Shown piece after piece: positions 1-45,687 of a stretch of DNA of 46,367 nt; within the stretch, counting starts at the first letter, position 1, and each line of letters opens with the position of its first letter. The notes beneath the pieces are model-generated. The model had not been told where the DNA came from. It saw nothing but the letters and a program-made list of their open reading frames with translations, and did not search any database. The stretch is from NCBI GenBank assembly GCA_009859145.1, contig VRVR01000064.1:74489-120855 (forward strand). The letters are read 5' to 3'. Made by a program: the position numbers and the translations under genes. The DNA comes from Andalucia godoyi And28. Lineage: Eukaryota; Protista; Jakobida.

Positions 1-93
1 GGCTTTGAATTTGAAGACCGCGGGTTTGTGAATGTGAAGGGAAAAGGCCAGCTGCAAGCGTACTTGCTGAATGGAAAGAAGAGCAAGGTGTAA
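1..93 (+). CDS. 3' end of a class III adenylyl/guanylyl cyclase (partial, runs off the left edge)
   Basis: Frame 1 reads GFEFEDRGFVNVKGKGQLQAYLLNGKKSKV* (TAA 91-93). This matches the C-terminal RGxxxVKGKGx(M/L)xxYxL signature of class III nucleotide cyclases. Not in the ORF track. Confidence 0.75.
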   Translation, partial: GFEFEDRGFVNVKGKGQLQAYLLNGKKSKV

Positions 94-361
94 GTTGGCG
101 CGGTGAACGGAAAGTATGACAAAATAAATAGTCGATACCCTGCGATGGGACATTTTTACGGATTGTCAGAAACCTGGAAAACTTATGGTGGGGACGGTCC
201 TTGGCAAATTGGTTGAGGCATTTAGATCAGCGGCTTCAAATATGAATTAAACCCTCGCTCCATGCAAGAGAAGTCTGTTCCAAAAAATCCTAAGCAGATG
301 CTGTGCATTTTTCTTTCCTGTGAAAGGATTTGGTAATTAAGTCTACTGCAGAGTTTTCATC

Positions 362-3300
362 ATGCAGAAGCTGTTCATAGCCTCCTGTGAGAAAGAACCG
401 CTGCCTTTTTCTGGAAATGTTCTCAACTACGGCGTTCTGCTTGGTATTTCCCTCATTGTGAACGAATCTGGGGCACAGTCTTCAGTCATCGTGAATGTTT
501 CCGACAATGTGAGGGATCACTTTAGATTTTCTGTCGAGCAGCTTCTCTATCAATCTTTGTCAGTTCTGGTTGACTCTGTGGAAATCTTTGAAGAAGGTCC
601 GACAAAGGATCTGAGCTTGTTGCACTCTAAAACCCTTGCGTATGCTGGGGAGACTTCGAGGTTTGGTCCCATTTCTGTGTTCATCAATGAACCTAGTGTG
701 TCCGTCGAAAACATGACTAAGAGGCAAGGCGACTCCTCGGATGAGCATTGCAGCGGAGGTCCGCTGAGGCATTTTCCTGGGTTTGCGTTTATGACAAAAG
801 GAATTCTAGTTCTGGAACTGGACTGTGCCGAGGCCACTCGTTCTCCGCAGCGTGCTCCATCCCCATGGCCCTCAAATTCCCTTCAGTATGTGGAAATGTA
901 CAGACGTGGCATCACTACCATGAACGAACGGATGTCGTCTTGCAAAACTCTGCATGACGTGTGCACAGTTTTGGGAACGCAAGTCTTTGAATTTCTTGGC
1001 TGCGACCGTTGCATGGTTTATGAGTTTGATGTTTCCGACGAGTCCGGAGACGTTATTTGTGAATGGAAGCGCGATGGTGTCACCACTTCGTATGATGGCC
1101 TGCATTTTCCTGCTTCCGATATTCCACTTATTGCTCGATCGTTGTATGTAAGGAATCCCATTCGTTGCATCCCAGATGTGGACATTGGAAATTCCAGGAT
1201 CTTGCCGACGTCTTCTGCGATAGATCTATCGAACAGCTTCCTACGCAGCGTCTCGCCAGTTCATGTTCAGTATTTGAAAAACATGAAAGTGTGCGCCTCC
1301 TTGTCTTTGAGCATTGTTGTTGAGGGGAGACTTTGGGGACTTGTTTCCTGTCACCATTATTCTCCCTTCTTTCCGCCGTTGCATGTTCGATCGATGTGCG
1401 AGTGTCTTTCCAAACTGGCGTCCACCACAATCTCCGAAAAAATTAGGCAGACAAAGGCTGCAACGTGGAACGCAGATCTTCAGTTGGTGCAGGCTGTTGT
1501 ATCGAAGCTGATTTTCGACATTCACGACGAAAACCTGAATCCCACGCATGTCGGCCTGTCGCGGTGGTTGCAATGCGCGAGTCCAACGCTGATGACGCGC
1601 CTTCGTTCATCCTTGATGATCCTCAAAGTCGCTGGAACAGCTTTCGTTTCGGATCAGTGTCCGTCTGTTGATCCATTCCTGGAGTTGTGTTCGTGGTTGC
1701 GCTCACGATCTGCTCCGCAGCGGCAAACGCTATCTTCCTACCTGTCTCCAGTGACAGATATTATCCTTCCGTCTGTCCAAGTGATTGACTGTCTCAAAGA
1801 GGAATTCCCCTCCCAGCTTCCCTACGACTTGCTGTGTAAGATCGACGGCGGCGACGACGCAAACGTGGCGGGTGTCGTGTTTGTTCCGCTATCCCCAAAC
1901 TGTGCTGATTTTCTTGCATTTTTCCGTCCTGAGAAGATTCGCACGATCAAGTGGCTTGGCAATCCTGCACAAAAGGAAGCGAACGAGAGCGGTTTGCTTT
2001 CTCCGAAGTTGTCGTTTGACTCGTATTTACAGACTATTGTGGGTAGGTCTGAGCGATGGAATTCAAGTGATGTCGACGTTTGCAGAATGGTCCAAGAAGG
2101 ACTGTTTTCACGGATGCAAAACATTTCCGTGCAGTTGGAAGAAAGGAGAGCTGTGAAGAGTGAATATCAAAAACTAGCGGCTCTGGAAAGCGACAAACTA
2201 CGCAGAGGGTTTTTGTCGCATCTGTCCCATCAGATGAGAACTCCGTTTAATAATGTTCTCGACACCCTTAATGATTTGGCACGAAAGGAAGATGTTTCGC
2301 AGGAAAGTATTCATCTTGCCTGTTCTTCTGCAACATCTGCATTAATGTTGATCGATAACTTGCTGGAACTCCTGCAGTTGGAAACTTCCGCCATGGACCT
2401 TGTGGAGCGTGAGGCGTCGCTTCCCGAACAGTTTGAGAAAGCCGCCAAAATTCTGCAGGTCGCAGCGGATCGTCGGGGCGTTCGGTTGTTCCTTTCCATA
2501 CATCCGGACATTCCATCCGCAGCTATTTTTGACGTTGAGCGTCTGAATCAAGTGCTTATTAACATTCTTGGAAATGCCGTCAAATATACAGAACCGCGTG
2601 GCTCCGTATTTATGAACGTCGTTTTGCTGCGGCAGATCGATCCAAGTCTCGTCGAAAAGGACAATGAAGCAACAATAGTTGTGAGTGTTCGAGATGAAGG
2701 AATCGGAATGGGTCAAGATGTCTTGGATAATTTGTTCAATCCACTGTTTCCGAAGGAAGCTGCGGTTTCGAAGCGAAAATACGGCGGCTCCTGTCTAGGA
2801 TTGACGCTGTGCAAACAGATTGTGGATCGCATGCGTGGTCGAATTGATGTGGACAGTTCTGTGGGTTCCGGCTCCGAATTCATTATTCGTCTTCCTTTGC
2901 GCCTACCGATGAATAGACCAATGCGATTGCTCCGCGATGACTACCTTGTTGTGTCCAGCAAGATTGGATGGCTTCGTGACAACTATCCAACAGTGCTGGT
3001 TCTTGCTGGCGCCTTCTTTGACACGATTGCATGGCTGTTGCGATTCTTTGGGTTTGACGTTATCCAGTGCACTGGACTTGCATCGCTGAAACACCGCCTT
3101 CAATTTGAACGAAAATACGTAATCTTCATTGAGGACGAAAGTTTGTATTTTGATTTGCCTTCCACTTCCGAGGCAACAGAGTGTTTGCTGCTTGTCAAGG
3201 AAGCCGCATTGCGAAACAGTCACATTATTCGAATTCGGTCTGAACATATGTCCAAAATTGTGGACCCCCAGTTCTCCGGTGCGTCGTCGTCATCCTCATC

Positions 3301-4080
3301 ATCCGGTTTTTCTGATACTGTTACTCTTCCACCAAATACTCCACAATTATCACCATATTTGCGAGAGAGGAAGACCGACAGATACACAAGCCACGACGGT
3401 ATTTCTTATTCCGAGGATCTTTTGCCTCTTGTCCAAGCCCGCTTTGACGAGTCTATTCTTCGGATTGATCTTGTTGCCGCAGAAATTTTCGAAAAGATTG
3501 GAGAGTTTTCTGACGTTTTGAAGTTGTGCAAAACATACACCATATTCAAACCGTTAACCTTGTTGTCCATCGAGGAGACACTGGTTGCTGTTCAAAAAGA
3601 GGGAATTCACAATCTGACGTTCTCTGTCAAGATAGGTTCAGCGAACGGATGGCACGATGAGCCTAGATCCGACCCGAGCACTGTCAGCGATGCAAAGAAA
3701 TGTGCGCTCGTTGCCGAGGACAATCCTTTAAATGCTCGAGTGTTGGCAAAACATCTTTCAAGACTTGAATGGGACTATGATATCGCGTGTCATGGCGTCC
3801 AGGCAGTAGAGCATTTCCAAGCAAATCCACAAAAGTACAGTGTGGTGTTGATGGATTGCTTTATGCCGATATGGACGGCTTCGAAGCAACCGCGAAGATC
3901 CGGATGGAAGAGAAGTTAATATCGGAAACTCACCGAATTCCCATCATTGCTATCACTGCAGATGTTTTGTACGAAACCCGGAAAAAGTGTTTCGAGGTGG
4001 GAATGGATGACTTCTTGGGGAAGCCCGTTCATCGGGAATCGTTAGATGCTGTACTCAAGAAGCACAAGTTGAGGCTGTAG
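362..4080 (+). CDS. Phytochrome-type hybrid sensor histidine kinase (PAS-GAF-PHY-HisKA-HATPase-degenerate REC-REC), bacteriophytochrome/fungal-phytochrome class, with a 1-nt frameshift in the final receiver
   Basis: N-terminal SCEKEPLPFSGNVLNYGVLL resembles the BphP CxxEPIHxPGxIQxHGxLL motif (Cys9 at 386-388). GAF: DRCMVYEF, LHFPASDIP (PASDIP 1109-1126), LRSVSPVH, LWGLVSCHH. PHY: WLGNP and PKLSF. H-box SHQMRTP; HATPase boxes NAVKYT, DEGIGM, GGSCLGL. The receiver starts LVAEDNPLN...VVLMDCFMP in ORF 362-3919 and continues MDGFEAT...IIAITAD...GMDDFLGKP in the other frame from 3871 to TAG 4078-4080. Confidence 0.93.
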
Positions 4081-4081
4081 G
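3945..4081 (+). repeat. 137-bp segment (phytochrome receiver 3' end) duplicated at 19375-19511
   Basis: Base-by-base comparison: CATTGCTATCACTGCAGATG...AAGTTGAGGCTGTAGG is identical in both copies except one substitution (GTACTC here, GTTCTC in the second copy). Confidence 0.95.
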
Positions 4082-4373
4082 GTGAATATTACGCAGCAGC
4101 AGATATTCGTAAACAGTGTACTTTCATTGATATAAGAGTGGTTCGTAAAGACTGCGGTTAAGGGACGTCGGTGAGTAACGTCCAGCACGAACGGACACTG
4201 ATTGTAGGGCAATCTCGGCTGCCGTAAGTAACCTGCAGCACTTTTTGCTCTGAAAAAAAGATGTGCAACATTTTGTTTGCTCGTTGTGTGATTTAAGAAC
4301 GTTCCAGACATTGCATTGCTAGGTTGACGTATCCCATTTGACTTTGGAATCTTCTGTATAGCATTTCACGTCC

Positions 4374-6592
4374 ATGTCATCCAATACGTCTGACGGCGAA
4401 CACAAGTCCGCCACACTGTCCTTCGAGGCTGGCGCCAGCCCCTTTTTGCGGTACCGTTTTCCGAGACAGTCTTCAGAGCTAGAGTCAGTTGTGCAGCAAG
4501 ATGCATCATCACTCAATGCTTCTCTGTATTCCGACACTCCCATGATGATCGACCATTCCAGAAGGAATCATGCACCTGCGCAAGGTTGCAGTACCAGCGG
4601 TGGCGAAGAACTTGGTTTGGACTTTGCTGGAAATCAAGTATTATTTTCAAATATCTTTGCGTCGACTCGTTCTGCAGCCCACCTGCTTGGCGAGCTGCTC
4701 TCTACAGCACTCTGCGGGAATGACATTACATCCTCATGCTTGTACACTGCTGCTTTTGTAGCGAAATCAGCAGCTGTTTATTCTTTTATTTCTCTTTTGT
4801 TGGTGGCTTTTGTGTTGTACTTTTTCCGGTTTGTCTATGAAGAACTGGGAGATGCTCTTCCGCTGAATTGGGGTTCGTACACAATCTTCTTGAATACGTC
4901 GCAGAAGTGGCTTGCTTCCTTTGCTGGCAGTTGCTCGTTCCTTTCCTACGTGGCAACTGCCGTTGTAAGTGTGGCAACTGCGATTTCGTATGGGTCTGCA
5001 CTGTGGGGTTCTGGTGTGGACGCTACTGCCCTTACAATCGCATTGCTTGCAGTTTTCTGCCTCTTGACGCTGCTAGGTCTGACAGAATCGGCGACCGTTG
5101 CAGTTGTGATTTTTGTCTTGCATGTCATTTCGTTGACCGCTCTGATTGTCGCTTGTTTTGTGTTCCTGTGCATGAACCCACATGTTATTCAGGAAAATTG
5201 GCGGAGCTCCGAGGCAGTTCCTTCTCAGTACAACGTCGTTGAAGGCATACTGATTGGGTTCGGCGCTGGTATGTTGGGCATCACAGGATTCGAAACAAGC
5301 TGCAACTTTCTTGAGGAGCAAAAGCCAGGGGTGTTCCCAAAGACTCTCCGCAACATGTGGATCTGTGTCCTGTTGTTCAATCCTCTCATATCGTTCTTCG
5401 CTTACGGAGTTCTGACGAACGATGAAGTTGCGAATGCATCTGGAGCCCTGCTTGCTGACATGGCACTCCGAGTGACTGGTGGGAACAGGATTTTCTTTGT
5501 CATCATTTGTGTCGATGCATTCTTGGTTCTTTGTGGAGCAGTTCTTACGGGCTACGTCGGCGTTGTTGGATTGCTAGGGCGTCTTGCGGAGGATCGCTGT
5601 ATTCCAGTTGTCCTGGCTGCCAAGAATTCCCTAACTGTCACCCGTACCTTTTCTATTCTACTATTTTTCGGGATTTGCGCGTCCATGGTGTACATTGTAG
5701 GGGGAGTGGAAAATCTCGCGATCCTGGAAGGAGTCTACGCGGTTGCATTCCTGATGGTCATGACTCTTGTGGCCATCGGAAACATGCTTCTCAAGTACTG
5801 TCGCTCCTATATTCCGCGTTGTACAACGTGCTCTCTGCGCACGGCGGTTTTTGCTGCATGCTGCACCTCTGCAGCTCTGCTAATTAACGTCATTGTCGCT
5901 CCGTCTGTGTTATATTATTTCCTGATCTATCTGTCCTTCTGTGCCGTCTGTCTGTTTATCATGTTTCAGAGACTCCGTATGCTCAAGATCTTCCAGTTCA
6001 TCTTGTGTTTAGCCTTGTCTCAGGTACGCTTATGGGGCTTGCATTTCGAAAATTGAGCGATGCCGAGTTCTCCGCATTTTGCAGTTCTGTAAATGCTTGG
6101 GTGAAGAGGGTGATGCATGACGTTTGCAGTCAGCCAATCGTTTTGTGCACTCGGGAGTCGGACGTGCAGTCTTGCCTAAAAATGTTGCAATACGTTCACG
6201 GAAATGAGCTGTGCGACCATGTAATTTTCGTTCACATGTTCTCCGCCGTTCCAAACGAATTCGTCACCGAAGCGCTATCTGAGGCCGACCAAATCGATAA
6301 TGATGAAGTCGTACTCACAGATCCGTCCCCCATTCAATTTCAGTTATTAGAGCATGACCTCGAAATCGTGCAAGGGCTTCGCAGCACCGTGGATTTTCTG
6401 CAACTGTGGTATCCATCGTATCGTATGGACTTGGTACTTGTGAATAGCACGTTCACTCCACTTTCGTTAGAAGCAGTGTGTAAGCATTTATCGGTTTCAA
6501 AAAATTTTGCATTCATTTCTTGTCCAGGAAAGCATGCGAACAGTGCCGTTTCCATTGGGAAGTTTGCAGGCGTCAGGATCGTAGTATCCTGA
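4374..6592 (+). CDS. APC-superfamily amino-acid permease with a C-terminal soluble domain, split over two frames at about 6005-6067 (intron or frameshift)
   Basis: ORF 4374-6056 has about 11-12 hydrophobic segments and APC motifs (GAGMLGITGFETSCNF, PGVFPKTLRNM, VLCGAVLTGYVGVVGLLGRLAEDRCIP). ORF 6005-6592 supplies a C-terminal domain (QPIVLCTRESD...LQYVHGNE...YPSYRMDLV...GVRIVVS) of the kind found on this permease subfamily. A candidate intron GT 6024 to AG 6067 would restore the frame. Confidence 0.85.
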
Positions 6593-6877
6593 CCCCTGCT
6601 GTCTGTAACTTGAGCACGTACCGGCGTACCATTTTGAAGGAGATGTGGCAATTCCGGTCGGCGAGAACCAACGTTTGGTAGCGCGCTGCTATCGCCCTTG
6701 GTCAGTTGCAGACACAGGCTTTTTCAACGTCAGATTGGGCGATGGCAGGCAGCTCGTAAATAAAATGTTCAATCGTTCTCAAAAAAACAGAAAACTATCT
6801 CCGCTGACGTTTATTGGAAGCGCGCTTACTGATGCCCATTGTCAGTGAATAATGCTCGGCTTGCATGAAGTCCGGAC

Positions 6878-7676
6878 CTAATTTAGAACGACAGAAAAAG
6901 AATCAACACACAAGGCCATCTTCTTGGAAACAATGACGTGGCCGATTGTCTCATTGCTGGAATTTCGCAGAATCAGTCGATCACGAAATCGTATTGGACG
7001 CGACAGCTTCAAAACCACTTCAACTTTCGGATTCTTCGACAAAGAACAGTAGCTCCCCGCGGATCACATCTCCCTCCGAGACTTCTACAAATGAAGGGAC
7101 GGCTGGCAAAACAGAATTCATTGCTGCCCACAGCTCGGAAACACCCTTGTCTTCAAATGAGTCCACGTGGAAGACAGACGCGCTGAATCCAACAGCACGA
7201 AGATACTTTTTCAAATCGTCTTCGTCGTTGGAGGCCGGCATCCCGCTTCCCACTTTTGTCCAAACCACAATCAAATCCTTGATACCCGTTGAGCGTATCA
7301 GCTTCAGATACTCCTTCACCTCACCCAAGCGAAATCCAGAATGAAATTCGTCGCTTTTTTATGATACACACAGAATTCCACAAGAAATATCTGCAGCAGT
7401 CAGCGCTTGCAGGAACTCGCGAATGAACATTTTGTGTCCTGGCGTGTCAAACAACTCAATGCTAGGTCCTATTTCTGTGCGGCTCCATTCAAAAGTCTTG
7501 TTACGTGAACGTTCCTCTTCAAACGTATCCAGCAGCTGTCCAAGCCAGTTATTTGGAGACTCCAGCTTTCTCTTCTCTACCTCGTGAGCGTCGGTTGACC
7601 CGTAGTTGACTAGCAGTCTACCGCACAGCGTGCTTTTCCCATGATCAACGTGCCCCGTCAAAAGAAACCGCTTCAT
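6878..7676 (-). pseudogene. Disrupted, shortened HBS1/eRF3/EF-1alpha-family translational GTPase
   Basis: G1 GHVDHGKST, G2 region EEERSRNKTFE, G3 DTPGH. An in-frame TAA at 7361-7359 interrupts GILCVS*KSDEFHSGF...GIKDLIVVWTKV, which resembles the eRF3/HBS1 stretch AILVVSARKGEFEAGF...LIVVVNKMD. ORFs 7359-7676 and 7020-7328 are the same frame. A third piece in another frame, VEVVLKLSRPIRFRDRLILRNSSNETIGHVIV (TAG 6880-6878), resembles the end of domain III. Confidence 0.78.
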
Positions 7677-11569: not shown

Positions 11570-14500
11570 TCAGTCATACATGTCAGGTACACCCAAATCA
11601 TCTTCGAAATCGTCTTCGTCGGACGACATGTCCTTGCGCGCTCGTTTGCGCAGACCTGCCTGCTTTTTGGAAAACAGCGACGCAATGCGCTCCTTTGTGT
11701 TTCCAAGAGCTACGGTCTTTTCCGTTTTCGGCGGCTTGACAACCGGCGGCGCCTGCAGTGTCTTCAGTTTCCGCGGCACCTTTGCACCTTCCACAACAGT
11801 CTCGGGCATACGAGCTTTCCATTCCTGCATGAACCAGTCCAATTCGGGAATCCACATCTCTTCTGCGCTTCTAGACTCCAATGCACGACAGGCTTCTTCA
11901 CTGGCAGAGGCTCGCACCCGCACCTCCGCCACCCGCACCGACGCGACATTGAGATCACGCAGCAGGTAGTCGAACGATCCATTCACCCTTGCAAGGCCTG
12001 CTGCTTCGAGGTCGGGCGACGGATCAAGCCCGTCGAGGTTCGCAAGCACGACCGTCTGCACCAAAGCACGATTCTCGACATACTGCACAATGCTTCGAAG
12101 TCGGACTGCTTCCAACCGTTTTTGCTCGAGGATCACCTGCTTGCGTCGGCGGTACAATTCCAGCCGAGCAGGCACGAAGGCACGAAGGATGTCGCATGGA
12201 TGCGCGAACTTGCGAATTCGAAGGCCCTCCCCGTCCGTGGAAAACAAGTGGACATTCGAAAACGACACTTGCCCTTGCAGCCTCATCAGTTTGTATACAT
12301 CGCGACTCATTAGATCCCTGACATCCTCGGAATTATGGAACTGGATGTGGAGACAAACGCGATTCTCCTCGCTCAGATTCTGTGCATCCTGAAATGGACC
12401 GACTTTGTTCTTCGAACTTCGGTCCACCATCCACTTCTGCAACTGCTCAAACATCGGCCGAACCCATGCATGAACAGGAAGCTCGGAAATCTGCAGCGTG
12501 CGCGGACCATCGCGCTTCACGCGACCAAAGTTTGCCCACGAACACGCTGCCCCTTCCACAGGAACGATCTCTCCCGTGAAGCCTGCATACCACGGTGTCC
12601 AACCGGTGCCGAAATGCTTCTCATACCGATCCATCTCACCTTCCACTGGGGCACCGGAATCGAGGAGGAAGGCTTTCAGGCGCTGGGCGAGATCACCAGG
12701 ATGAAAATTCGGCACTTCCGTCGAAAACCCAGTCCCAATGCCGCGGGCACCATTCACAAGGATCATGGGCATGATGGGAAGCATGACCTTTGGCTCAACG
12801 TTTTGTCCTTCTTCTGAAAAGTACTCCAACAATGCCAGATCGTCGGTCGGAAACAGAATGTGCGCAATTGGATCCAGCCGCGTGAAAATGTACCGCGGCT
12901 TCGCAGCATCTTGACCGCCCATCAGTCGACTTCCAAACTGGCCAACCGGCACGAGCAAAGGAACGTTGTTGCTCCCCACAAACGACTGGGCCATGCCGAT
13001 AATCGTTTCACCCAACGACGCCTCTCCGTGGTGATACTTGGTTTGCCGAACGACCATGCCAATCAATTCCGACACGCGCATGTCCTCTCCATCGCCATCG
13101 TGTCGCAACAGCGTGTACAGCACCTTGCGCTGTGCAGGAGTCAGTCCGTCCAGCACATTCGGAATCGACCGAATGCAATCGTACAAACTCGAGGACACCA
13201 TCTCCTTTTGTAAGAAATGGTCCATTGTGATCGTTTCGGCAGCAATCTCGGAGATGCTGACATCGAGCAGGGCAGCATCGACCGTTTCCTGCTCTTTCCA
13301 GCACTCTTCCAGTACCTTGCGCCGCTCTTCGGCCTTCTTTTCCGAAAAGAAAACATCCAGCATCGACCGGTTTGTATCCGCGAAAAGAAACGAGCGTTCA
13401 TAATCCTGCGGTCGCTCAAAATACCGACGGCCTTCTTCCGTCGTCGAAGTTCCCAGTCCCTTGTAGTACTTGACACGCCACGCACGCTGCTCGTCCTCGG
13501 AGAGACCTTCAAACCACGTTCGAAACTGGCGCAACGCAAAGAACTCCTGGAAATCACTGCCATTCGAATGAACTGCTCGGATAATCGGAGTCCGCAGTTC
13601 TTTCAAGAAATCCGGAATGCGAACAACCAAGTGTGGCCAGAAGAATTGGAAGAAGTTCAGCAGCAGACCCTTGATGTGCAACCCGTCGTGGTCCTGGTCG
13701 GTCATCAGCACCACGTGGCCATAGTGCAACGTATTCAGCTCGGCATCGTTGTCGTAAACAAGATCGAAACTGAGATTGAGTGCCTTCACAATGTTTTTCA
13801 CTTCTTCGTTGTCCAGGACATCTTCCCGCGAGACTTCGCAGACGTTCAGAAACTTGCCCCGCAGCGGGTACACGCCAAAATGTCTTTTTTGATCGGTCGA
13901 CAAAGAATTGCTCACCAGCGCCATGGCCGAGTCGCCCTCCGTCAAGATCAAGGAACACTGGCGCCGCTGGTCTGTTCCCGCAAGAGCCGCATTCTGCAGC
14001 TTGGGAACATCAAGAGCGCTGCCGACGCGGAGGTTCGAAAAGCGGATGTCGTCCTGCTTCAACTTTTGAATGATCGCCTTGGTCACACTCTCAACGAAGC
14101 GATTTTGGACCAGTTTTTGCACAGTCTGCTTCGCAAGGCCTCCGTTCCACACCGGCAATTCCGAAAGATTGAGAAATTTGACCAGCTCTTCCTTGGTTTG
14201 TGACGAAAACTCGGGATTGTGCAGTTGGCAGCAAACGACAACTTGCATGACTTGGCGAAAATGCGTGAGGTTTGCATTTGCGCATTTCTTCCTCACTTCG
14301 TCCGACACCCCGTTGTTCCAGAGCCCATCGATGATCATCTTCACATGCTCGCCGCCACCGGACGTGAAAATGCCGTTCACAATGGATACTTGTTGCAACT
14401 CGCGGCCCAACGGCTGAATGGCGAACACCACCAACAATCGATTAGCAACGATGGGGAGGAACACGGCATCCGGAAAGAATGCTCTCGCGTACTGCTGTGT

Positions 14501-15286
14501 AGTCGGCAAAAGATCCGAGCAGCTGACATCATGCGTCCACGTGCCATCGGAACCACTCCGGAAATGCACATGCACGTTGCGCCCGATCATGTGAAGGTAT
14601 GCAGAAACATCCAAGACCCGTCGAAAGAACAGTGACACAAGATCGTCCGAAATATGCTCCAGTCCCATTCGCCCAAGATCGGGGATGAAGGTCACACAGA
14701 CGGAGGGTTGGGAAGCGGGTGCGGGATTCAAAACGGGTGGGGTGTATTCGCTCATGTTGTTGCCCCACTCCTGCTTGTACTCGGTATTGCCATCGCACAA
14801 GTCGACTGAAAACTTGCTTGAGAACACATTGGCAAGCTTGGCTCCGTACCCATTGCGTCCGCCCACCACACGCGCAGTATTGTCCTCGAAATTCGAGGAG
14901 GACATGAATTCCGCAAACACAACTTCCGGGACGTATAAATGCGTCCTCTGGTGATGGGGCTGCAGTTCCACGCAACCGCCATTGTTGTACACGGAAATGG
15001 AATCTGCGTTTCGATCAATTGTAACGCGAATCTCGGTGACGCGCGGCTCCTGCACCGCAAAATCCGAGGCATTGACGAGAACTTCGTCAAAGATCTTAAG
15101 AAGTGCTGGCGAGACCTGCACATTCGGGTGCTTGACCATGCATCGAGCATTCACATCAAAAACCCACGCTTCAACCGGTTTGACCGTGAGCGCGCCGACA
15201 TACGTATCTGGACGAGTGAGAATGTGCACCCTGTGATCCAGAATTTGCACTCGAGAATTCGACGAAGATGAAGCAGCGGTTTCCAT
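11570..15286 (-). CDS. TOP2: Type IIA DNA topoisomerase (eukaryote-like single chain, short C-terminal tail)
   Basis: GHKL ATPase: FDEVLVNASD, SSNF...GGRNGYGAKLANVFS. TOPRIM: LILTEGDSA, PLRGKFLNV, MTDQDHDG, YYKGLGTS. Breakage-reunion core: RSIP..DGL, YHHGEASL, GQFGSR, PRY (catalytic Tyr), NGARGIGTGFS. 1238 aa, no introns. Confidence 0.96.
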   Translation of the reverse strand: METAASSSSNSRVQILDHRVHILTRPDTYVGALTVKPVEAWVFDVNARCMVKHPNVQVSPALLKIFDEVLVNASDFAVQEPRVTEIRVTIDRNADSISVYNNGGCVELQPHHQRTHLYVPEVVFAEFMSSSNFEDNTARVVGGRNGYGAKLANVFSSKFSVDLCDGNTEYKQEWGNNMSEYTPPVLNPAPASQPSVCVTFIPDLGRMGLEHISDDLVSLFFRRVLDVSAYLHMIGRNVHVHFRSGSDGTWTHDVSCSDLLPTTQQYARAFFPDAVFLPIVANRLLVVFAIQPLGRELQQVSIVNGIFTSGGGEHVKMIIDGLWNNGVSDEVRKKCANANLTHFRQVMQVVVCCQLHNPEFSSQTKEELVKFLNLSELPVWNGGLAKQTVQKLVQNRFVESVTKAIIQKLKQDDIRFSNLRVGSALDVPKLQNAALAGTDQRRQCSLILTEGDSAMALVSNSLSTDQKRHFGVYPLRGKFLNVCEVSREDVLDNEEVKNIVKALNLSFDLVYDNDAELNTLHYGHVVLMTDQDHDGLHIKGLLLNFFQFFWPHLVVRIPDFLKELRTPIIRAVHSNGSDFQEFFALRQFRTWFEGLSEDEQRAWRVKYYKGLGTSTTEEGRRYFERPQDYERSFLFADTNRSMLDVFFSEKKAEERRKVLEECWKEQETVDAALLDVSISEIAAETITMDHFLQKEMVSSSLYDCIRSIPNVLDGLTPAQRKVLYTLLRHDGDGEDMRVSELIGMVVRQTKYHHGEASLGETIIGMAQSFVGSNNVPLLVPVGQFGSRLMGGQDAAKPRYIFTRLDPIAHILFPTDDLALLEYFSEEGQNVEPKVMLPIMPMILVNGARGIGTGFSTEVPNFHPGDLAQRLKAFLLDSGAPVEGEMDRYEKHFGTGWTPWYAGFTGEIVPVEGAACSWANFGRVKRDGPRTLQISELPVHAWVRPMFEQLQKWMVDRSSKNKVGPFQDAQNLSEENRVCLHIQFHNSEDVRDLMSRDVYKLMRLQGQVSFSNVHLFSTDGEGLRIRKFAHPCDILRAFVPARLELYRRRKQVILEQKRLEAVRLRSIVQYVENRALVQTVVLANLDGLDPSPDLEAAGLARVNGSFDYLLRDLNVASVRVAEVRVRASASEEACRALESRSAEEMWIPELDWFMQEWKARMPETVVEGAKVPRKLKTLQAPPVVKPPKTEKTVALGNTKERIASLFSKKQAGLRKRARKDMSSDEDDFEDDLGVPDMYD

Positions 15287-15490
15287 GAGAGAAACGCGAT
15301 GAATGCGATTATCATTGCAGAATGAAAAGGGAACAGGGGAAAGGCGGGTTCTGCGATTTGGTGAGTCGGCGAAATTCAGGAATCCTACCGGTCACTTGAT
15401 GCACCGTTTTCCCAGACTCACCGATATTTTCCATTTTTCCTCCCTTTTTCTTCGCGTTTTTTCTTCCATATTTCCCGTGAGGTGTCAAAA

Positions 15491-16084
15491 ATGTCCATGA
15501 CAAGCCGTGCAGTTTCGTCTTTGTTGAATATTCCACACAAGGATCGGAAAAGACTGAAAGACCGGCAATCAGAGGTTCTCGAAAGTGGCGTGAACCGGCT
15601 GTTTCGCTCGGTGCCCTATGCCGGCGAATTTTCCGAATTGCTGGTCGTGACGATGCACTGCCCAAAGTTCAGCAAGAAGGGCATCGACTTGAGCATGCAG
15701 GTTCGTGAAAACACCGGTGGTCGATTTACCAGCTCGCGGTTCACCAACCCAGATGCCGAGGATGCTTCGATGGACGCAGTTGCATTGCAAATACCGGCAA
15801 AACGACCGGCGCAGACAGAATCGTTGCTCGAGTTTCTGGACCGCAAGCTACAAGCCGGCACTTCCACAACGCTCGCGAACGCCTTACAGGAATACGTCAA
15901 TGAGGAGACCAAGAGAGGACGGAAGCGAGTGCGTCTTTGCTCGGAACACGACGAACTCATGCAGAAGGCAGAAGCAATCGAAAAAGCCGAGGGAGCAGAT
16001 GCATCGAGCAGTCGCAGGAAGCATTCCTCGATGCAGAGGCGCGCATATGGGCGCACGAAACGGGAGGCCCATAAAGTAGAATGA
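15491..16084 (+). CDS. Hypothetical basic, probably nuclear protein; head-to-head with TOP2; has a decayed paralog at about 41880-42315
   Basis: First in-frame ATG is 15491 (the track starts at GTG 15482). NLS-like KRGRKRVR. Conserved blocks shared with the second locus support coding status. Confidence 0.62.
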   Translation: MSMTSRAVSSLLNIPHKDRKRLKDRQSEVLESGVNRLFRSVPYAGEFSELLVVTMHCPKFSKKGIDLSMQVRENTGGRFTSSRFTNPDAEDASMDAVALQIPAKRPAQTESLLEFLDRKLQAGTSTTLANALQEYVNEETKRGRKRVRLCSEHDELMQKAEAIEKAEGADASSSRRKHSSMQRRAYGRTKREAHKVE

Positions 16085-16450
16085 AGCGACTTTGGTGCGG
16101 AGTATTTCCTTCACTTCCATTTTTGGGTCACTCAATGCACCCTGCAGACGATGCAGCTTTGTGAGTGCCAGTCAGTTACGGGTTCTGTTTTACTGAGCCC
16201 CCGGGGATGGAAGCGGCTGTCGCAGATACTTGAAACGGCAGTATTTCCAAGACCGGATGGATTCTTTGCAGGCTGTGGTTGTCCATCCATCTTTACTCGG
16301 CTTTACGTGCTGCGAGTAACGACTATTTCTATTTCAGGCTGGGGTTCAATAACAGACTTTATGAAATAGAGGAACAAGTCGATAATTCATTTTTCGTAGA
16401 TACCCGTAACGCATTGGGGTGTCTGGGCAGTTTCAGATGCTCGAGCCTCG

Positions 16451-16600
16451 CTAACGAACTTTTGAAGCTCCGCAGCTGCCGCAACGGGTTCCGGTGTATT
16501 TGTTGTATCCGCCTTTGCAGTTGCTCGCGGTACAGTGCTTCGCTCCGCATCCGCTGCAGACGTGCAACTGGTTACCACCACACTTATCACAAGCTCCCAT
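16451..16600 (-). CDS. 49-aa Cys/Gly-rich microprotein (zinc-finger or metallothionein-like), below the ORF-track cutoff
   Basis: ATG 16600 to TAG 16453-16451: MGACDKCGGNQLHVCSGCGAKHCTASNCKGGYNKYTGTRCGSCGASKVR. Eight Cys, arranged CxxC-x7-CxxC-x4-C-x4-C-x11-CxxC. Confidence 0.6.
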   Translation of the reverse strand: MGACDKCGGNQLHVCSGCGAKHCTASNCKGGYNKYTGTRCGSCGASKVR

Positions 16601-17325
16601 CCTTGCAACTCTTTATTACTTTGCTAGATAACAGACAAAGAACGTGTAGACCGAGCAAAGGAGGCCAGAACCAAGAAAAATCAGAACAAAATGCTTTTTT
16701 AATGTTTGCGGAAAGATTCAGGTGCTTGCCTTCTTAACGACTTTTTTCTGATCAGACGACATTCTACAAATTTGTATGGTGGACGGTAATGATGAATCTA
16801 CCCGCACAAGCAGACTCGTTCGTTGGCGCGTACGCTGTTCAGCTTCCATTCCGCCGGCAGCGTCCGTTTGCTTTGCAGGTTAGAATGGGGCTCAAAATAC
16901 GAAGTATTACTGAGCAGAAAATCAATTATGAAAGTCGTATGCGCAACTTGGAACTCATTTTTTACAAATCCGAAAGCAGACCTAGGCACGACCAGGACAA
17001 GTCATGAGCGAATTGCCATTCGACGGATTGTGCTGTTCTTCCTTGTTGACCCGACCAGCCGGATTGTCTCCACCGCAGACGTTGTGCATTTGCCACACAC
17101 AGTACTGAACAACGAAGCAAGGTGCAGGATCCGTCTCGGCATGATAGTGGAGCGATCTGCCGCCAAAAAGGACCTGAACGAGGAACTGTCGCGCAACTTT
17201 AAATTTTGCGAGTATGGACGAGGCTGTAAAACGAGCCACAGGACGATGGAGTTCCCCGTATAAGCGCATGCGCTGAACAAAGCCGAACCTCCCATCGTTC
17301 TTTTTCTGGTTATCCTTGCAGATTT

Positions 17326-18498
17326 TTAGTAAGACTCATTGGTAGAATGTGCGTATCCACGTCTTGCGTCGTCGCTGTAAAGGACTACTTTCGGTTGAGC
17401 AACGTACGCTGGTTCAACATGACTCCAGGCAGGTGCAGAAGGATGAGGACCAACCACGGCAGGTGCCTGATGGTGTTGAGAGGGATGGTACTCGTTGGTA
17501 GAAAAGTAAGGATTAGTACTGCTTGCAGTTGTGGGAAATCCGACATCCACTGCCGGCGACTTGGGAATAGCAGAATCTGCAGTCTGTTGGGTGGTTGGCA
17601 GATCCGAGCTACCGATCTTGGGATGCTTCCCACGGTAGACGGAAGACAATTTCAGTGCAATCAGATCAACCAACAGCGCAACTCCAAACATACCGCAGGA
17701 CGCAGCAGCGAGAGACAATCCAGGTCCATCACGAATACCTCCATTTCGAGACCCAGAACCTGGCGTAAGGGCGGAAACATTTTGGTTTGCCCGGTACTGA
17801 ATCGTGACGCCACACGCAAATACAGCTGCGAGGCAAACTAGCAAGCAGTGAAAGACGAGAAATCTTGACAAGGACACATATGACGCATACTCACGTTGAG
17901 AGTCGGGAACAGTAGCACAAAACTGGCATGCATAAGCCATAAACAACGCCCAAGTAATCGCTGAAAGGACACCAAACACAAGAGAAAAGACTGCAACAAT
18001 GTGCAACCCTGCAATCGCATCTCGATACGTTTCGAAGGCAGAACATTGACTGTACCCTGCATCACACACAACTTGAACAAAATCATTCCACTTTTTCGCA
18101 ACATGATTGGTACAAGCACCGGACACACCAGAGGATGAACAAGTGTCCACATACGCATGGGACAGAGACGCATAAAAGACTCCAAATGGTGCCGAAGCGT
18201 CTCCCAACAACTTGTTCATTAGTTCCACGTAGGTCGCAGACGCAGATGCTGGTGCTAGTTTGCTGTTCGATGTCCCTGATGCTAACCACATCACCTCGTA
18301 TGAAGGAGGGAAAGCGGCAAGGCCTATGCAAATGGTTGCCGGGACTGTGAATAGAAAAAGAAACATTGTGGTTAGAGTGATGCAAGACTGGTAAGGCTGT
18401 CCAAGAAATCCTGCTCTTCCCGGTCGATGTTGGCTTGGAAATGCAGCAGAGGACGCACCCGAATGACCGCTTCCATGAGAAGGAGGAGGAGCACGCAT
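17326..18498 (-). CDS. Four-TM membrane protein (claudin/SUR7/amastin-like tetraspan topology) with a Pro/Ser-rich C-terminal tail
   Basis: Four hydrophobic segments (FLFLFTVPATICIGLAAF; LHIVAVFSLVFGVLSAITWALF; FLVFHCLLVCLAAVFACGVTI; GPGLSLAAASCGMFGVALLVDLIAL) and a Cys-containing first extracellular loop. 390 aa. Confidence 0.68.
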   Translation of the reverse strand: MRAPPPSHGSGHSGASSAAFPSQHRPGRAGFLGQPYQSCITLTTMFLFLFTVPATICIGLAAFPPSYEVMWLASGTSNSKLAPASASATYVELMNKLLGDASAPFGVFYASLSHAYVDTCSSSGVSGACTNHVAKKWNDFVQVVCDAGYSQCSAFETYRDAIAGLHIVAVFSLVFGVLSAITWALFMAYACQFCATVPDSQREYASYVSLSRFLVFHCLLVCLAAVFACGVTIQYRANQNVSALTPGSGSRNGGIRDGPGLSLAAASCGMFGVALLVDLIALKLSSVYRGKHPKIGSSDLPTTQQTADSAIPKSPAVDVGFPTTASSTNPYFSTNEYHPSQHHQAPAVVGPHPSAPAWSHVEPAYVAQPKVVLYSDDARRGYAHSTNESY

Positions 18499-18739
18499 GT
18501 CTTTTCAGCAAATGGAAAAATTCGAGTAGCTGAAACCTCGGGAGTTGGAGACAAGGCTAGCGAAATGCAGAGTGTGCATATTTTTAGTGGGAATCGGGCA
18601 TCGACTTGACCCAAGTTTGCGTCTGCTCGAACCCAAACCTCCCGATTCAAGAAATTTGGTCTTCTTCTTCCACTCTCCATTTTTCATTCTTCTTTTACCC
18701 TTCTTTTATTACAAATTCTCTTTACCATAGCGCTGACTG

Positions 18740-19603
18740 ATGAGTTCGGCTGATCGAAATGCCGAAATTCAGAAGCTGCTACTGCAGATAGAACAGTTAC
18801 AACGGGAAACCCAACTGATTTAGTCTGAACGAGAACAGCTGCAACGGGAAAGTGACGCCCTATCCCAGCAGGAAGACAAGAATACTTTGTCTGAGCCCAC
18901 TCTGGAGCAACTGCGCCAAGTTACGGAGACTGCACGGGAAGAAACAAGGAAGGCGAGTGAAGGACTAAGGAAGTCGAAGGACGGGCTGAAAAAGATGAAA
19001 ATCGAGAAGTTTCTCTCCAATATGTCGCACAGTTTGTTGCAAGCGTATATATCGTCGAGAGGATTCATGGATTATCTTTATCGAAATGAAATTTCGTTTA
19101 AAGACATGTTTCCGTGTCTTTCCGTGCCTCCAAACTGGGACGATTTCCATGCTTTGTGGAACGAATTGGAGGAGAAACTTCCATCGGATGCGTGCTCCGA
19201 ACCGCTTCTTCAAGAGCAATTTCGGATATTCGTTTTCTCAGTTTCTCTCTCAGCATTGCAACTTGCATCTGGCAGATTTCTCGTCGGTGTGTGTGACGCA
19301 TCAGCTGGGCACGACGGAGGATCCCAATCGAAGAAATCCGAGGCTCTGACGAATGTAACCCGCCGATTTACCAGCATTGCTATCACTGCAGATGTTTTGT
19401 ACGAAACCCGGAAAAAGTGTTTCGAGGTGGGAATGGATGACTTCTTGGGGAAGCCCGTTCATCGGGAATCGTTAGATGCTGTTCTCAAGAAGCACAAGTT
19501 GAGGCTGTAGGATGAACGTCGTTCTGCGCAATGCCCTCTCCTACGTTTCCTACTGGAGCTGCATCGACGCTTAGTGTACACCCGTTTTTGGTTTTGGCAG
19601 TGA
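18740..19603 (+). pseudogene. Chimeric pseudogene: paralog of the 36615-38597 coiled-coil/nuclease/kinase gene with most of its body replaced by a 137-bp phytochrome receiver fragment
   Basis: ATG 18740 MSSADRNAEIQKLLLQIEQLQ resembles MSLSDPNDKIQELLKQFEQLK. Premature TAG at 18821-18823. WDDFHALWNE...SEPLLQEQFRIF resembles WEDFQAMWNE...PEPLLQVQFRLF, and SKKSEALTNVTRRF resembles SKLSEAIQQVYQRF. The phytochrome patch follows (19375-19511). After its TAG, the same frame reads DERRSAQCPLLRFLLELHRR, resembling the paralog C-terminus EERRPLRSFLQRLHRE. Confidence 0.85.
19375..19511 (+). repeat. Second copy of the phytochrome 3'-end segment (3945-4081)
   Basis: 136 of 137 bases identical by direct comparison. 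Confidence 0.95.
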
Positions 19604-22360: not shown

Positions 22361-25300
22361 CTACTCGGCGGCAGGCGGAGGGTCTGCGGCAGCGACATCC
22401 TCAGCAATTCCCGAGTCTCTCTCCTGGAGTGGCGTACAATCAATGTTCGACTGTTCTTCACAATTCGAAGGGGCCGATTTTTCGTTCAAACCAGTGTCGG
22501 GCACCATTTCCGCCGCACTGATGTTGGTCTCTGGCTCGGAAATTCGCGACTCTTCACTGACGACGTTTTCTTTCTCTGGCGCCGCTTCCGTCTCCACGAT
22601 GACGGTAGAGACGTCAATGCTCGACGACATCTTGCATTCTGCAACATGCGATGATGATCCACACTCCGTGTCGTCTGTGCTCATGTCGAGCATGGGGATG
22701 GCGGGAGATAAAGGCAGAGCTGCAGACTTGCGCCGTTTCCAGAACCAGACTCTTCCGACAACTAGGGCGCCGAGAACTACCAGAGGTACCAAAACAATTG
22801 CAGCAATGTCTCCTGCAGATAGTGACCTCGATCCGCTTCCGTCAGACGATGGTGAAGAAGGGCTCCGGAGCGCATAAAAAACCGTCACAGTCGGCTGTGA
22901 TCCGGAGCTGCGGACAAAGTGTAGAGCAGGTGTAGGAGACAACGGCGTCGGATTGTACAGACCGACGTACACCGGCCCGCTCGCAAGGATCGACAGTGTT
23001 GCCGTTGTCGACTCGATGCGCTGCATGACTTCCCAGCTGGCCGAAGACGGCGAGGGGTTCGATGTCGACAGATATGCATCCACCGTGCCCCCGGTCACCG
23101 TGACAGTGATTTCGACGGTTCGTGCGCCGGCGGTTGCGAACGGTGGTGTGGACACGAACTTTGGCTGGCCGGGAGCAACAGCACCTACCAGCACCTCGGA
23201 ATTCTCGGCGACAACCTCTGTCTCTGACAGCGCAATCCAGGCACTGCCTGCCGCCGATCCACGCATGCACACGAAGCACTTTGCGTTTTGCACAAACCAC
23301 GCGCTTGCCGACGTGAGCGTTGTCACATTCAGCGCCAGGCTCAGCGACTCTCCTTTGGTGCTCGCAGTCGGCAGCGTTTCAAATGTGCTGACGTTGCACG
23401 AGGCAAACGATTCCACGGTCACTGCCTGGCGATTCCAGGTCGCATACACAGCGAGGGAGGCATTCGACGAGCTCAGCTGGTGCGATGCACACTGCCAATC
23501 TGCCGACAGCAGCGACAGTTCTGTGGGCAATAGTGCAGTCTCGGAAACATTGTAGACATTGCACCGGGGAGCTCTGTCCACGCTGGAGACTCCGCTGCTG
23601 CAGGTCGTGCAGTATGGTGATGCAGTTGGCGAGTACGTTCCTACTGGGCACGCATCGCAAGCCCCGCTTGCGTAGATGCCCGTGTAGGTTCCTGCAGGAC
23701 ACGGGCCGCATCCAGAGTTTCCGGATCCGGGAGCAAACCACCCCGGATAACACTGCACACAGCTTGCCGATCCGCTTGCGGGATACCATCCAGCAGCGCA
23801 GGGTGTGCAGACGCTGACGTTGTTCGCACCAACGACTGACGACGCCTGTCCAAAGGGACAGTAGTAGCAGGAAGGCTGGTCCGGCAGATTCTGCCAGGTG
23901 CCTGCTGCGCACTGTGCACAGGTCGTTGCGCTGACGCGGTACTGGCCGGGAGAGCATGTGCAAGCGCCGCAGGACGTCGATCCGACAGCGAGCGCGCACT
24001 GTCCGGTGCTGCAAGCTGTGCAGGTAGCGCTGCCCGCCGCCGACGAGAACGAGTTCACGGCACATGGAATGCACGATGTTGCATTCGTCGAGCCGTTGCT
24101 CGGATTGTAGGTACCTGCAGAGCACAGTGCGCACGACGTGGATCCCGCAGCGGTCGTGTAGCTTCCGGCAGAACAAGGTGCGCACACAGAGCTGGTTGCA
24201 GATCCAGTGGCGTTTCTCCATGTCCCGGCGGCACACAACGTGCATAAAGTTGAACCGTTGGCCGCTGCGAACGAGCCAGCAGGACATTGCAGGCACGATG
24301 CCGAGCTGATTCCGCCTGTGCGGTTGCTGTATGTCCCAGCAGCACAAAGCGTGCATGATGTCGAGCCATTCAATGCCGAAAACGAGCCAGCCGGACATGC
24401 AAGGCATGCAGATGCGCTCGACGTACCCCCAGTTGTGTTGCTGTATGTTCCGTACGGACATAAAACGCAAGCACTGGACCCGGCTGTTGAGTATGACCCA
24501 CTCGGGCAATCAAAGCACGAAGAAGCGCTCGTGGCACCAGTTGTGTTGCCAAACGATCCGGCGGCACATGCATGGCAAGATTCAACACTTGACGCACCCG
24601 TTACGTTCCCAAAAGAACCAGCAGGGCATGACTGGCATGAGCCGGATCCGCTCGCAGCGGAAAATGTTCCTACAGGGCACTGCGTGCATACTGAAGAATT
24701 GATTGCACCGGTGGCATTGCCAAATGTTCCCGCAGCACAGGGTGTGCATTGCGACAATCCAGCCGACGTTGCGTAACTACCTGCTGGACATGCAAAGCAA
24801 GCCGCAGAGCTGTTTGCAGCAGTGGTATTGCCAAACGTCCCCGCATCACAGAGTAAGCATTGTGATGATCCATTGGATGCAGTATAACTGCCTCCTGGAC
24901 ATGCGAAGCAAGACGATGAACTGTTTGCTGCAGTAGCATTGCCAAATGTGCCCGCAGCACAGGGTGTGCATTGCGACAATCCAGCCGACGTTGCATAACT
25001 ACCTGCTGGACATGCGAAGCAAGCCGATGAACTGTTTGCTGCAGTAGCATTGCCAAATGTGCCCGCAGCACAGGGTGTGCATTGCGACGATCCAGCTGAG
25101 GCTGCGTAACTACCTGCTGCACATGAGAAGCAAGACAAAGTGCTGTTACCCCCCGTCGTAGGGTTATATGTACCAGCAGGACACAATGTGCAATTAGGCG
25201 CTCCATAGGAAGCAGCGTATGTTCCTTCTGCGCACACATCGCAGCTTTGACCATTGAGGCCGGCAGCACCCGGAGAACATGCGATAGTCATCACTACTGC

Positions 25301-27462: not shown

Positions 27463-28497
27463 CTATTGCGCCGGGAGTTCAGCGAACTGACGACCACGCA
27501 CAGCTGCACAGAACTCACGTATTCGAACTGTCATCGCATTGTCCGCACTGCACCGCTCTTCCAAATCAAAAAGCGTTAGCGCCGCGTCCCTCAGCTGCTG
27601 GAAAAACAAGCGAAGAGGCCCAAGGCCGTTCAAAACAGGCGTGTCAAGCGAGACATCCAGGAGATGAGCGATGATTTCTCTTCGAATCTTAAACAGGTCG
27701 TCCTTCGTTCGTACGCGGGTGTGTGAGTCCTGTTGCAGATTCTTCTTCTCATCAAGAACGATGGCCATTGGCGGCAGCCACGAGATCACGTCACCAAATG
27801 CAATGTACATTGTCGTCAGAATGACTTGTTGAAAGCAGATCTGTAATCGCTCGCCATCGGACAGATCGGCCAACGACGCCACTGCATCCAGCCAATCGGG
27901 CGAGAACGCAGAATGGTAGTGGAACTCGTCGTCTCTCTTTTGCATGAATGATGCACCGCCCCAGTTGATCAAGCATACAGGAAACATAAAATCATTGAGA
28001 GGTTCCGTCAGAAGCACGATGTTCTGCGGACAAATATCTATGTGGTGGATGCCATTCTCGTGGCAATTCGACACGATGGATGTCAGCTGAAGAAGGAGCT
28101 CGGTGCAGTAAAGCATCGCATGCTCAGAAAAGCACGATGCAAGTGGCAAAGGGTTGCCCACGGGAGTCGTGCAGAGAACACCACCGCGCTCGGACTGTCC
28201 AGAAACCACAAGGGACGGCACCCAGTACTTGTGAGCGTCCCAGTCGATTCTCGAAATTTCGAGCAGCACACTTCGCTCCGTTTCCATATCACCCAGCTTC
28301 GAAGGTGGAAAGCTCTTCACGACAACTGGCGTCGTTTGATCCACCACACCCGTCGCAACCTCGACTGCATCCGGCTCTCCCACTCCATGTACAGTGCACG
28401 CAAACCCTCCTGAGTCCAGTGCAACGGAACTGGTTTACAGCAGATCATAGTCCCAGCCGCTGCGAATCTGCAGAATGCGCAGATGCAGGAACACAGT
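27463..28497 (-). pseudogene. 5'-truncated, decayed kinase half of the coiled-coil/nuclease/kinase family (paralog of 36615-38597)
   Basis: HHIDICPQN...LINWGGASF...FSPDWLDAVASL closely matches HHMDICPQN...LIDWGGASF...FSPDWLDAVASL. Upstream in the same frame, VFLHLRILQIRSGWDYDLL*TSSVALDSGG matches VFICLRIFDSESGWNYELLETAPIALDDGG, with TAA at 28437-28435 and an internal deletion of roughly 45 codons. The DFG-position Asp is replaced by Asn. The track start (28383) is a GTG. Confidence 0.85.
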
Positions 28498-45583: not shown

Positions 45584-45687
45584 TTGGAATGGAGTTGTTG
45601 CACAAAAAAATAAACAAAAGACGACGAGTGACAATCAGGTGGCCGTTTTAGAACTCCCCAACACACCTGAGACCAGCAACCGAGGAG

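Follow-up and report, generated by a model that had tools for sequence, protein, structure and literature searches.

We analysed a 46,367-nt stretch of the genome of the jakobid Andalucia godoyi And28 (contig VRVR01000064.1; hereafter the window) and found that it probably carries a nuclear gene for a bacteriophytochrome-type photoreceptor, a hybrid histidine kinase that is predicted to bind a bilin. Positions are given in the numbering of the window, whose position 1 is position 74,489 of the contig on the forward strand. The encoded protein runs from a PAS-GAF-PHY photosensory module through a HisKA/HATPase transmitter and a middle region of ~250 residues to a C-terminal receiver. A second, diverged copy of the gene, ANDGO_07399, is present in the same organism.

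Gene structure and photosensory module

The open reading frame (ORF) at 362-3919 (+) encodes 1185 amino acids (aa), and the phytochrome coding sequence (CDS) extends to 4080 in another frame. The N-terminus of the protein is well defined, because an in-frame stop codon lies 24 nt 5' of the ATG. An initial annotation, made from the letters of the window alone, had assigned positions 362-2100 to the phytochrome. The photosensory module does lie there, and the gene continues through kinase and receiver to 4080, past a frameshift at 3869/3870 that the annotation had missed.

We then compared the photosensory part with profiles, sequences and structures. Pfam GAF (aa 197-353, 51.7 bits) and PHY (aa 407-586, 66.9 bits) both exceeded their cut-offs, and aa 1-613 matched bacteriophytochromes (BphPs) with E = 6e-56 in a database of 5.8 billion proteins, well beyond chance. 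The AlphaFold2 model of the same residues reached a predicted local distance difference test score (pLDDT) of 86 and a predicted template-modelling score of 0.85, with low confidence confined to inserted loops, and showed the PHY tongue as a predicted beta-hairpin. When this model was searched against PDB with Foldseek, the top 50 matches were all phytochrome photosensory modules, aligned over ~590-600 columns with target TM-scores of 0.76-0.86, and they included complete PAS-GAF-PHY crystal and cryo-EM structures. The model thus points to a complete PAS-GAF-PHY module despite the weak score of the PAS_2 profile.

The bilin pocket was examined in an alignment with 120 bacterial BphPs. Cys9, which lies within ASCEKEPLPFSG ('ASCEKEP'), occupies a column that is Cys in 97% of these proteins; its counterparts in XccBphP and in the dual-Cys cyanobacterial phytochrome FiDCB (PDB 9jry) are their N-terminal Cys residues, and the conserved E12 and P13 come next. 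PASDIP was found at aa 250-255 and SPVH at aa 298-301, where FiDCB has 'SPCH' and its GAF Cys aligns with Val300. In 88 columns the BphPs are conserved to 85% or more, and the window protein agrees with them in 71. Among the retained residues are Y220, F249, D253-I254-P255, R259, Y262, R268, R295, S298, H301, Y304, S313, S315 and H331, which we take to be the pocket residues by their correspondence to DrBphP numbering. With an N-terminal Cys and no GAF Cys, the protein therefore has the biliverdin-type arrangement of BphPs and of fungal phytochromes (Fph). On these points the initial annotation was borne out: alignment, Pfam, AlphaFold2 and Foldseek placed the PAS-GAF-PHY module, Cys9 in CEKEP, PASDIP and SPVH where it had reported them, and the alignments to the 120 BphPs and FiDCB agree with its assignment to the BphP/Fph biliverdin class.

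Transmitter, receiver and a single-base deletion

The transmitter matched HATPase_c with 80.2 bits (aa 724-847) and HisKA with 24.2 bits (aa 614-674), the latter slightly below the cut-off. Its motifs are present: the H-box His (H623), the N-box at aa 734, the G1 box DEGIGM and the G2 box GGSCLGL. The receiver likewise has its acidic pair (E1119/D1120), the phospho-acceptor D1165, T1199 and K1221. Its second half is encoded by the ORF at 3787-4080, in a different frame, and after both frames were joined the Response_reg profile matched with 74 bits over positions 2-110 of 111.

The frames meet at 3863-3879, which reads 'atg ccg at atg gac ggc' where receivers expect 'MP-x-MDG', with the x codon down to two bases. 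At this position the receiver of ANDGO_07399 is intact (MDCFMPNMDGFEAT) and the matching codon is Asn; the window copy has therefore lost 1 nt. An intron was considered as the cause of the frame change and rejected, as the two receiver halves abut with just two spare bases. The deletion is the sole lesion in the 3.7-kb gene, and the next 70 codons are open and ~85% identical to the paralogue. Because the frame beyond it is still open and conserved, the deletion arose very recently, if it is not simply an error of sequencing or assembly.

The ~250 residues between kinase and receiver had no Pfam match. The AlphaFold2 model of ANDGO_07399 showed here a beta-alpha-beta pattern with pLDDT of 50-63, followed by ~150 residues with pLDDT below 35. 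The middle region may thus hold a degenerate receiver-like alpha/beta domain and, after it, a Ser-rich disordered linker.

A diverged second copy in the same genome

ANDGO_07399 is 79% identical to the window protein across window aa 144-1237. The identity differs by region, from 94% in GAF, 88-89% in the kinase, 81% in the receiver and 74% in PHY to 34% in the Ser-rich linker, and this domain-wise pattern is the one expected when purifying selection acts on a functional sensor kinase. The two copies share their tongue variants (PKLSF in the window protein and PKESF in the paralogue, WLG, and Y.Q), and these variants are therefore fixed in the Andalucia lineage.

In EukProt, ANDGO_07399 is automatically labelled 'Phytochrome-like protein cph1'. 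Its model begins at the equivalent of window Met144, with the N-terminal 143 residues absent, so that it lacks the bilin Cys and the first half of PAS; the gene model is probably truncated at its N-terminus. The published model thus hides the defining Cys of the family. At the position of SPVH it has SSVH, and the 'cph1' label is imprecise, because the GAF Cys of the Cph1 type is replaced by Val. The database model of the window phytochrome is the truncated 1185-aa ORF.

A further copy, of the 3' end of the gene, was found on the same strand 15.4 kb downstream (19357-19516). It covers the last 51 receiver codons, the stop codon and 6 nt beyond, and is 96% identical overall, with a core of ~137 nt that contains one synonymous mismatch. 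This tract forms the C-terminus of an ORF of 207 aa (18887-19510, +). In the N-terminal part of this ORF, 'KFLSNMSHSLL' faintly resembles an H-box and VGVCDASAGHDGG is a degenerate receiver strand. The ORF could be a chimeric hybrid-kinase remnant, a gene-conversion tract or an assembly artefact.

The gene is a resident of the Andalucia nuclear genome

A. godoyi is a free-living heterotrophic jakobid (Discoba) with a compact, intron-poor genome of ~20 Mb (PMC7050145). The initial annotation, which was not told the host, had suggested an intron-poor heterotrophic protist, and this description fits. The topoisomerase II encoded in the window (11570-15286, -) is 96.5% identical to ANDGO_07753 (KAF0852137.1), 92.9% to ANDGO_06851 and 87.7% to ANDGO_07751 of A. 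godoyi, and the phytochrome, the topoisomerase, a permease, a VWA protein and one kinase of the window are exact EukProt entries. The GC content at third codon positions (GC3) of the phytochrome is 0.50, and that of its neighbours 0.41-0.63. Since the neighbours are eukaryotic, GC3 matches and a second diverged Andalucia copy exists, contamination is excluded, and the phytochrome is a resident nuclear gene of this jakobid. The initial annotation had named a contaminated contig, or a fungal or stramenopile host, as grounds for giving up its reading; the jakobid host belongs to neither of these groups.

Relationship to other phytochromes

When 1.84 billion representatives were scanned exhaustively with HMMER, ANDGO_07399 was the only close relative (890 bits), and the next match scored 207 bits. 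Among ~15 billion proteins, the nearest relatives after ANDGO_07399 were bacterial BphPs with ~30% identity, and the named proteins among the next-best matches were bacterial. Bacterial BphPs gave the highest HMMER scores in every module (maxima of 208 bits for the photosensory module, 129 for the kinase and 98 for the receiver), and fungal Fph scored below them in each, with at most 157 bits for the photosensory module.

The likeness to bacterial BphPs, especially the hybrid proteins with kinase and receiver (structural references include XccBphP, SaBphP2, RpBphP3, Agp1 and DrBphP), covers the PAS-GAF-PHY order, the N-terminal Cys without a GAF Cys, the pocket with DIP, Arg, Tyr and both His, and the HisKA/HATPase and receiver layout. 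The Andalucia motifs 'RSVSPVH', 'IVVEGRLWGL' and 'CHHYSP' match theirs nearly letter for letter. In contrast to these proteins, the Andalucia gene is nuclear, its product is ~30% identical to them and has PAS insertions and the tongue motifs PKLSF, WLG and YLQ, just 8 residues precede the Cys, and ~250 residues with a possible pseudo-receiver and a disordered linker separate kinase and receiver.

Fungal Fph (for example Aspergillus nidulans FphA; group VIII histidine kinases) resemble the Andalucia protein in being biliverdin-type proteins of heterotrophic eukaryotes with a Cys before PAS, and in the hybrid layout of photosensory module, kinase and receiver that feeds a phosphorelay. However, they have an extension of 150-350 residues before the Cys, which the Andalucia protein lacks, and they keep the signatures 'RAMSPIH', 'CHSYG' and PRxSF, whereas the Andalucia pocket follows the bacterial consensus. 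The phytochromes of diatoms and brown algae (Dph) are of the biliverdin type. Together with the phytochromes of Physarum polycephalum, they are non-plant eukaryotic proteins linked to histidine kinases, some of them in non-photosynthetic cells (PMC6324907). No Physarum or Dph sequence was among the best database matches, which are the extent of the comparison with these two groups. Cph1 and plant phytochromes share the knotted PAS-GAF-PHY fold, and Cph1 was the top Foldseek match by E-value and scored 154 bits by sequence; in these proteins a GAF Cys ('CH') holds phycocyanobilin or phytochromobilin, and Val300 takes its place in the Andalucia protein.

The phylogeny of the photosensory core that the initial annotation had proposed was built as a neighbour-joining tree of GAF-PHY with BphP and Fph sequences; Dph (diatom and brown-algal), Physarum, cryptophyte and plant phytochromes were left out. 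It placed the Andalucia pair as sister to fungal Fph in 72 of 100 bootstraps. We did not accept a common origin with Fph on this basis, because the two branches it unites are the longest in the tree, motifs and bit scores favour bacteria, and the other eukaryotic groups are missing. The grouping is probably the result of long-branch attraction, and we do not take the tree as evidence of origin. The candidate origins are an ancient acquisition from bacteria that have not been sampled and a eukaryotic lineage of long standing.

Evidence against a working photoreceptor and alternative explanations

Several observations weigh against the reading proposed here. The PAS_2 profile reached 12.8 bits, below its cut-off of 21.4. 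In the tongue, Lys replaces the Arg that 100% of the bacterial sequences have (R549K, PRxSF to PKLSF), W555Y falls in a 97%-conserved column, and WLG and YLQ stand in place of W(G/A)G and (W/F/Y)xE. The Cys-adjacent 'EPIHIPG..IQPHG' is degenerate and reads 'EPLPFSG..VLNYG' (I14L, H15P and Q21L). The frameshift at 3869/3870 breaks the receiver, and the product as written is truncated. No heme oxygenase, HPt protein or partner response regulator was found among the window ORFs, and the A. godoyi genome paper and its supplements mention none of them (PMC7050145). The tongue and N-terminal changes may alter Pfr stability or dark reversion, and at the sequence level they are the chief ground for caution about normal photochemistry.

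Some of these points would also fit a window copy that is a decaying pseudogene, with the receiver deletion real and ANDGO_07399 doing the hybrid-kinase job. The frameshift and its truncated database model, the duplication of a 3'-end fragment 15 kb away, which points to local rearrangement, and the degeneracy of several N-terminal and tongue motifs speak for decay. However, there is one lesion in 3.7 kb with an open, conserved frame behind it, all catalytic and pocket residues are kept, and GAF is 94% identical between the copies. The degenerate motifs (PK.SF, WLG) occur in both copies where they can be compared, so they are traits of the lineage and not signs of decay, and a single-base indel is also a frequent assembly error. 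We regard a pseudogene as unlikely. Quite unlikely, too, is a kinase that has the phytochrome fold without being a reversible red/far-red switch, and that instead senses bilin, heme breakdown or redox state or is photochemically atypical. R549K, W555Y, WLG and the loss of His and Gln in 'EPIHIPG..IQPHG' would suit such a protein, as would the non-photosynthetic host. Yet no residue of the bilin pocket has been lost, from the DIP Asp and the two His to the Arg and Ser that bind the propionates, the Lys could preserve the salt bridge to the DIP Asp, and heterotrophic fungi, Physarum and many non-photosynthetic bacteria sense light with such phytochromes (PMC6324907).

The remaining alternatives concern the source of the gene. 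It might be virus-borne, as in phaeoviruses, and lie in an endogenous virus-like or mobile multi-copy element, as the neighbouring topoisomerase II, which is atypical (35-38% identity) and has at least 4-5 diverged copies, and the sharp boundary of a duplicated 7.1-kb topoisomerase segment with 95% nt identity could suggest. However, there are no viral hallmark genes among the large window ORFs, the duplicated segment (11570-18673) excludes the phytochrome, the permease, the VWA protein and the kinase have no copies at ≥90% identity, and the context of the nearest non-Andalucia topoisomerase II is uninformative; we consider this origin very improbable. Bacterial contamination or a very recent bacterial transfer is already effectively refuted. 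The best non-Andalucia relatives are all bacterial or metagenomic BphPs and the pocket motifs are bacterial-like, not Fph-like, but identity to any bacterium is just ~30%, the gene sits in a 46-kb stretch among eukaryotic genes of the same base composition, the two Andalucia copies are 21% apart with a domain-wise pattern of conservation, and the protein has a long disordered Ser-rich linker in the eukaryotic style. With the bacteriophytochrome-type hybrid kinase as the preferred reading, we give about even chances to the fuller proposal of a working red/far-red biliverdin photoreceptor that forms an isolated, long-branched lineage, the first in Discoba, of either early eukaryotic origin (shared with fungi) or unsampled bacterial origin.

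Features of the window

The features of the phytochrome gene and the copy of its 3' end are collected in Table 1.

Table 1 Features of the A. godoyi phytochrome gene, in window numbering
Feature	Position	Strand	Evidence
CDS of the hybrid histidine kinase in its first frame (aa 1-1169), as far as the frameshift	362-3868	+	ORF; Pfam GAF, PHY, HisKA, HATPase_c and first half of Response_reg
Cys9 codon, predicted biliverdin thioether site	386-388	+	Alignment to 120 BphPs, XccBphP and FiDCB
Divergent PAS domain, aa ~9-190, loop insertions at ~110-134 and 160-172	386-931	+	PAS_2; AlphaFold2; Foldseek
GAF bilin-pocket domain, aa ~191-360	932-1441	+	Pfam GAF, 51.7 bits; conserved columns
PHY domain, aa ~361-590	1442-2131	+	Pfam PHY, 66.9 bits
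PHY tongue, aa ~525-560, variant motifs WLG, PKLSF and YLQ	1934-2041	+	Tongue alignment; AlphaFold2 hairpin
Transmitter, DHp/HisKA and HATPase_c	2132-2911	+	Pfam; motif positions
H-box His623 codon	2228-2230	+	Motif position
Middle region, no Pfam match	2912-3688	+	Pfam; AlphaFold2 of the paralogue
C-terminal receiver, split by the frameshift; stop codon at 4078-4080	3689-4080	+	Response_reg after joining the frames
Frameshift site, 'ccg at atg'	3869-3870	+	Sequence; frame analysis; comparison with ANDGO_07399
Direct copy of the phytochrome 3' end (3927-4086)	19357-19516	+	Repeat search; blastn; alignment

The 3' end of an upstream gene occupies 1-90 (+), 271 nt 5' of the phytochrome and on the same strand. 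It encodes GFEFEDRGFVNVKGKGQLQAYLL, and this sequence corresponds to the final 25 positions of the catalytic domain of class III adenylate/guanylate cyclases (PF00211, 15 bits); the match is weak because the fragment is so short.

The topoisomerase II at 11570-15286 (-) is 35-38% identical to other eukaryotic topoisomerases II and has no HATPase_c match in Pfam, and at least 4-5 diverged copies (88-96.5% identical) are present in the A. godoyi proteome. The 7.1-kb segment that contains it (11570-18673) has 95% nt identity to positions 1-7244 of VRVR01000066.1 (GCA_009859145.1). The homology stops exactly at the stop codon, with a sharp boundary followed by divergence, and no phytochrome was found within 10 kb of the matching segment on VRVR01000066.1. 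Together, the topoisomerase copies and the matching segment point to a segmental duplication or a multi-copy element.

The genes at 22361-26371, 27463-28383, 28721-33907, 36615-38597 and 43151-45634 (all -) include two large secreted or adhesin-like proteins, one of 1336 aa whose 13 ephrin-receptor-like Cys-rich repeats form tandem arrays with periods of 111 and 147 nt, and the other a VWA-VWD-PKD protein of 1728 aa. The other three are divergent protein-kinase genes, two of which share a 168-nt segment with 80% identity (27760-27927 and 36879-37046). The window contained no tRNAs and no Rfam families.

Proposed signalling and implications

In the proposed Andalucia photoreceptor, a heme oxygenase would make biliverdin IXa from heme, and the pigment would be seated in the GAF pocket with a thioether link to Cys9 ahead of PAS. 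Red or far-red light would isomerise the bilin between the red-absorbing (Pr) and far-red-absorbing (Pfr) states, and the PHY tongue and the long helical spine would relay the change to the DHp/CA kinase. Autophosphorylation of His623 would be altered, and phosphate would pass to Asp1165 of the C-terminal receiver. As in the phosphorelays of fungal Fph and other eukaryotes, an independent HPt protein and a response regulator would receive it next. The analysis shows the anatomy of the protein; bilin binding and photoconversion are inferred, as are the direction in which the kinase is regulated, its partners downstream and what the pathway does physiologically. A light- or depth-dependent behaviour, or encystment, would be a plausible output in a soil or freshwater bacterivore. 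That the bilin might be derived from the heme of prey, as the initial annotation suggested, is purely speculative.

Andalucia is chiefly known for its mitochondrial genome, which resembles bacterial genomes more closely than any other does. Apart from those of plants and algae, phytochromes have been described in fungi, slime moulds, stramenopiles and bacteria. A survey of eukaryotic histidine kinases reported no phytochrome in the sampled excavates (Naegleria, Trichomonas, trypanosomatids and diplomonads) and, among non-stramenopile groups, found phytochromes only in plants and algae, fungi and Physarum (PMC6324907). Our literature searches on Andalucia, jakobids, Discoba and excavates found no description of a phytochrome, and the Andalucia kinase therefore widens the known range of phytochromes. 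It is a new lineage for a known kind of photoreceptor and not a new kind of system. Since ANDGO_07399 already carries its automatic label, the family in A. godoyi was not unseen, only undiscussed.

With these results, red/far-red sensing would reach a further deep branch of the eukaryotes and a flagellate that lives by heterotrophy alone. The very divergent sequence, ~30% identical to anything outside Andalucia, bears on the origin of eukaryotic phytochromes, for which several bacterial transfers and ancient inheritance are the opposing views, and the tongue offers a natural Arg-to-Lys variant of PRxSF for mechanistic study. If the proposal is true, light would control phosphorelay signalling in a flagellate that feeds on bacteria, by way of an unusual tongue that contains Lys.

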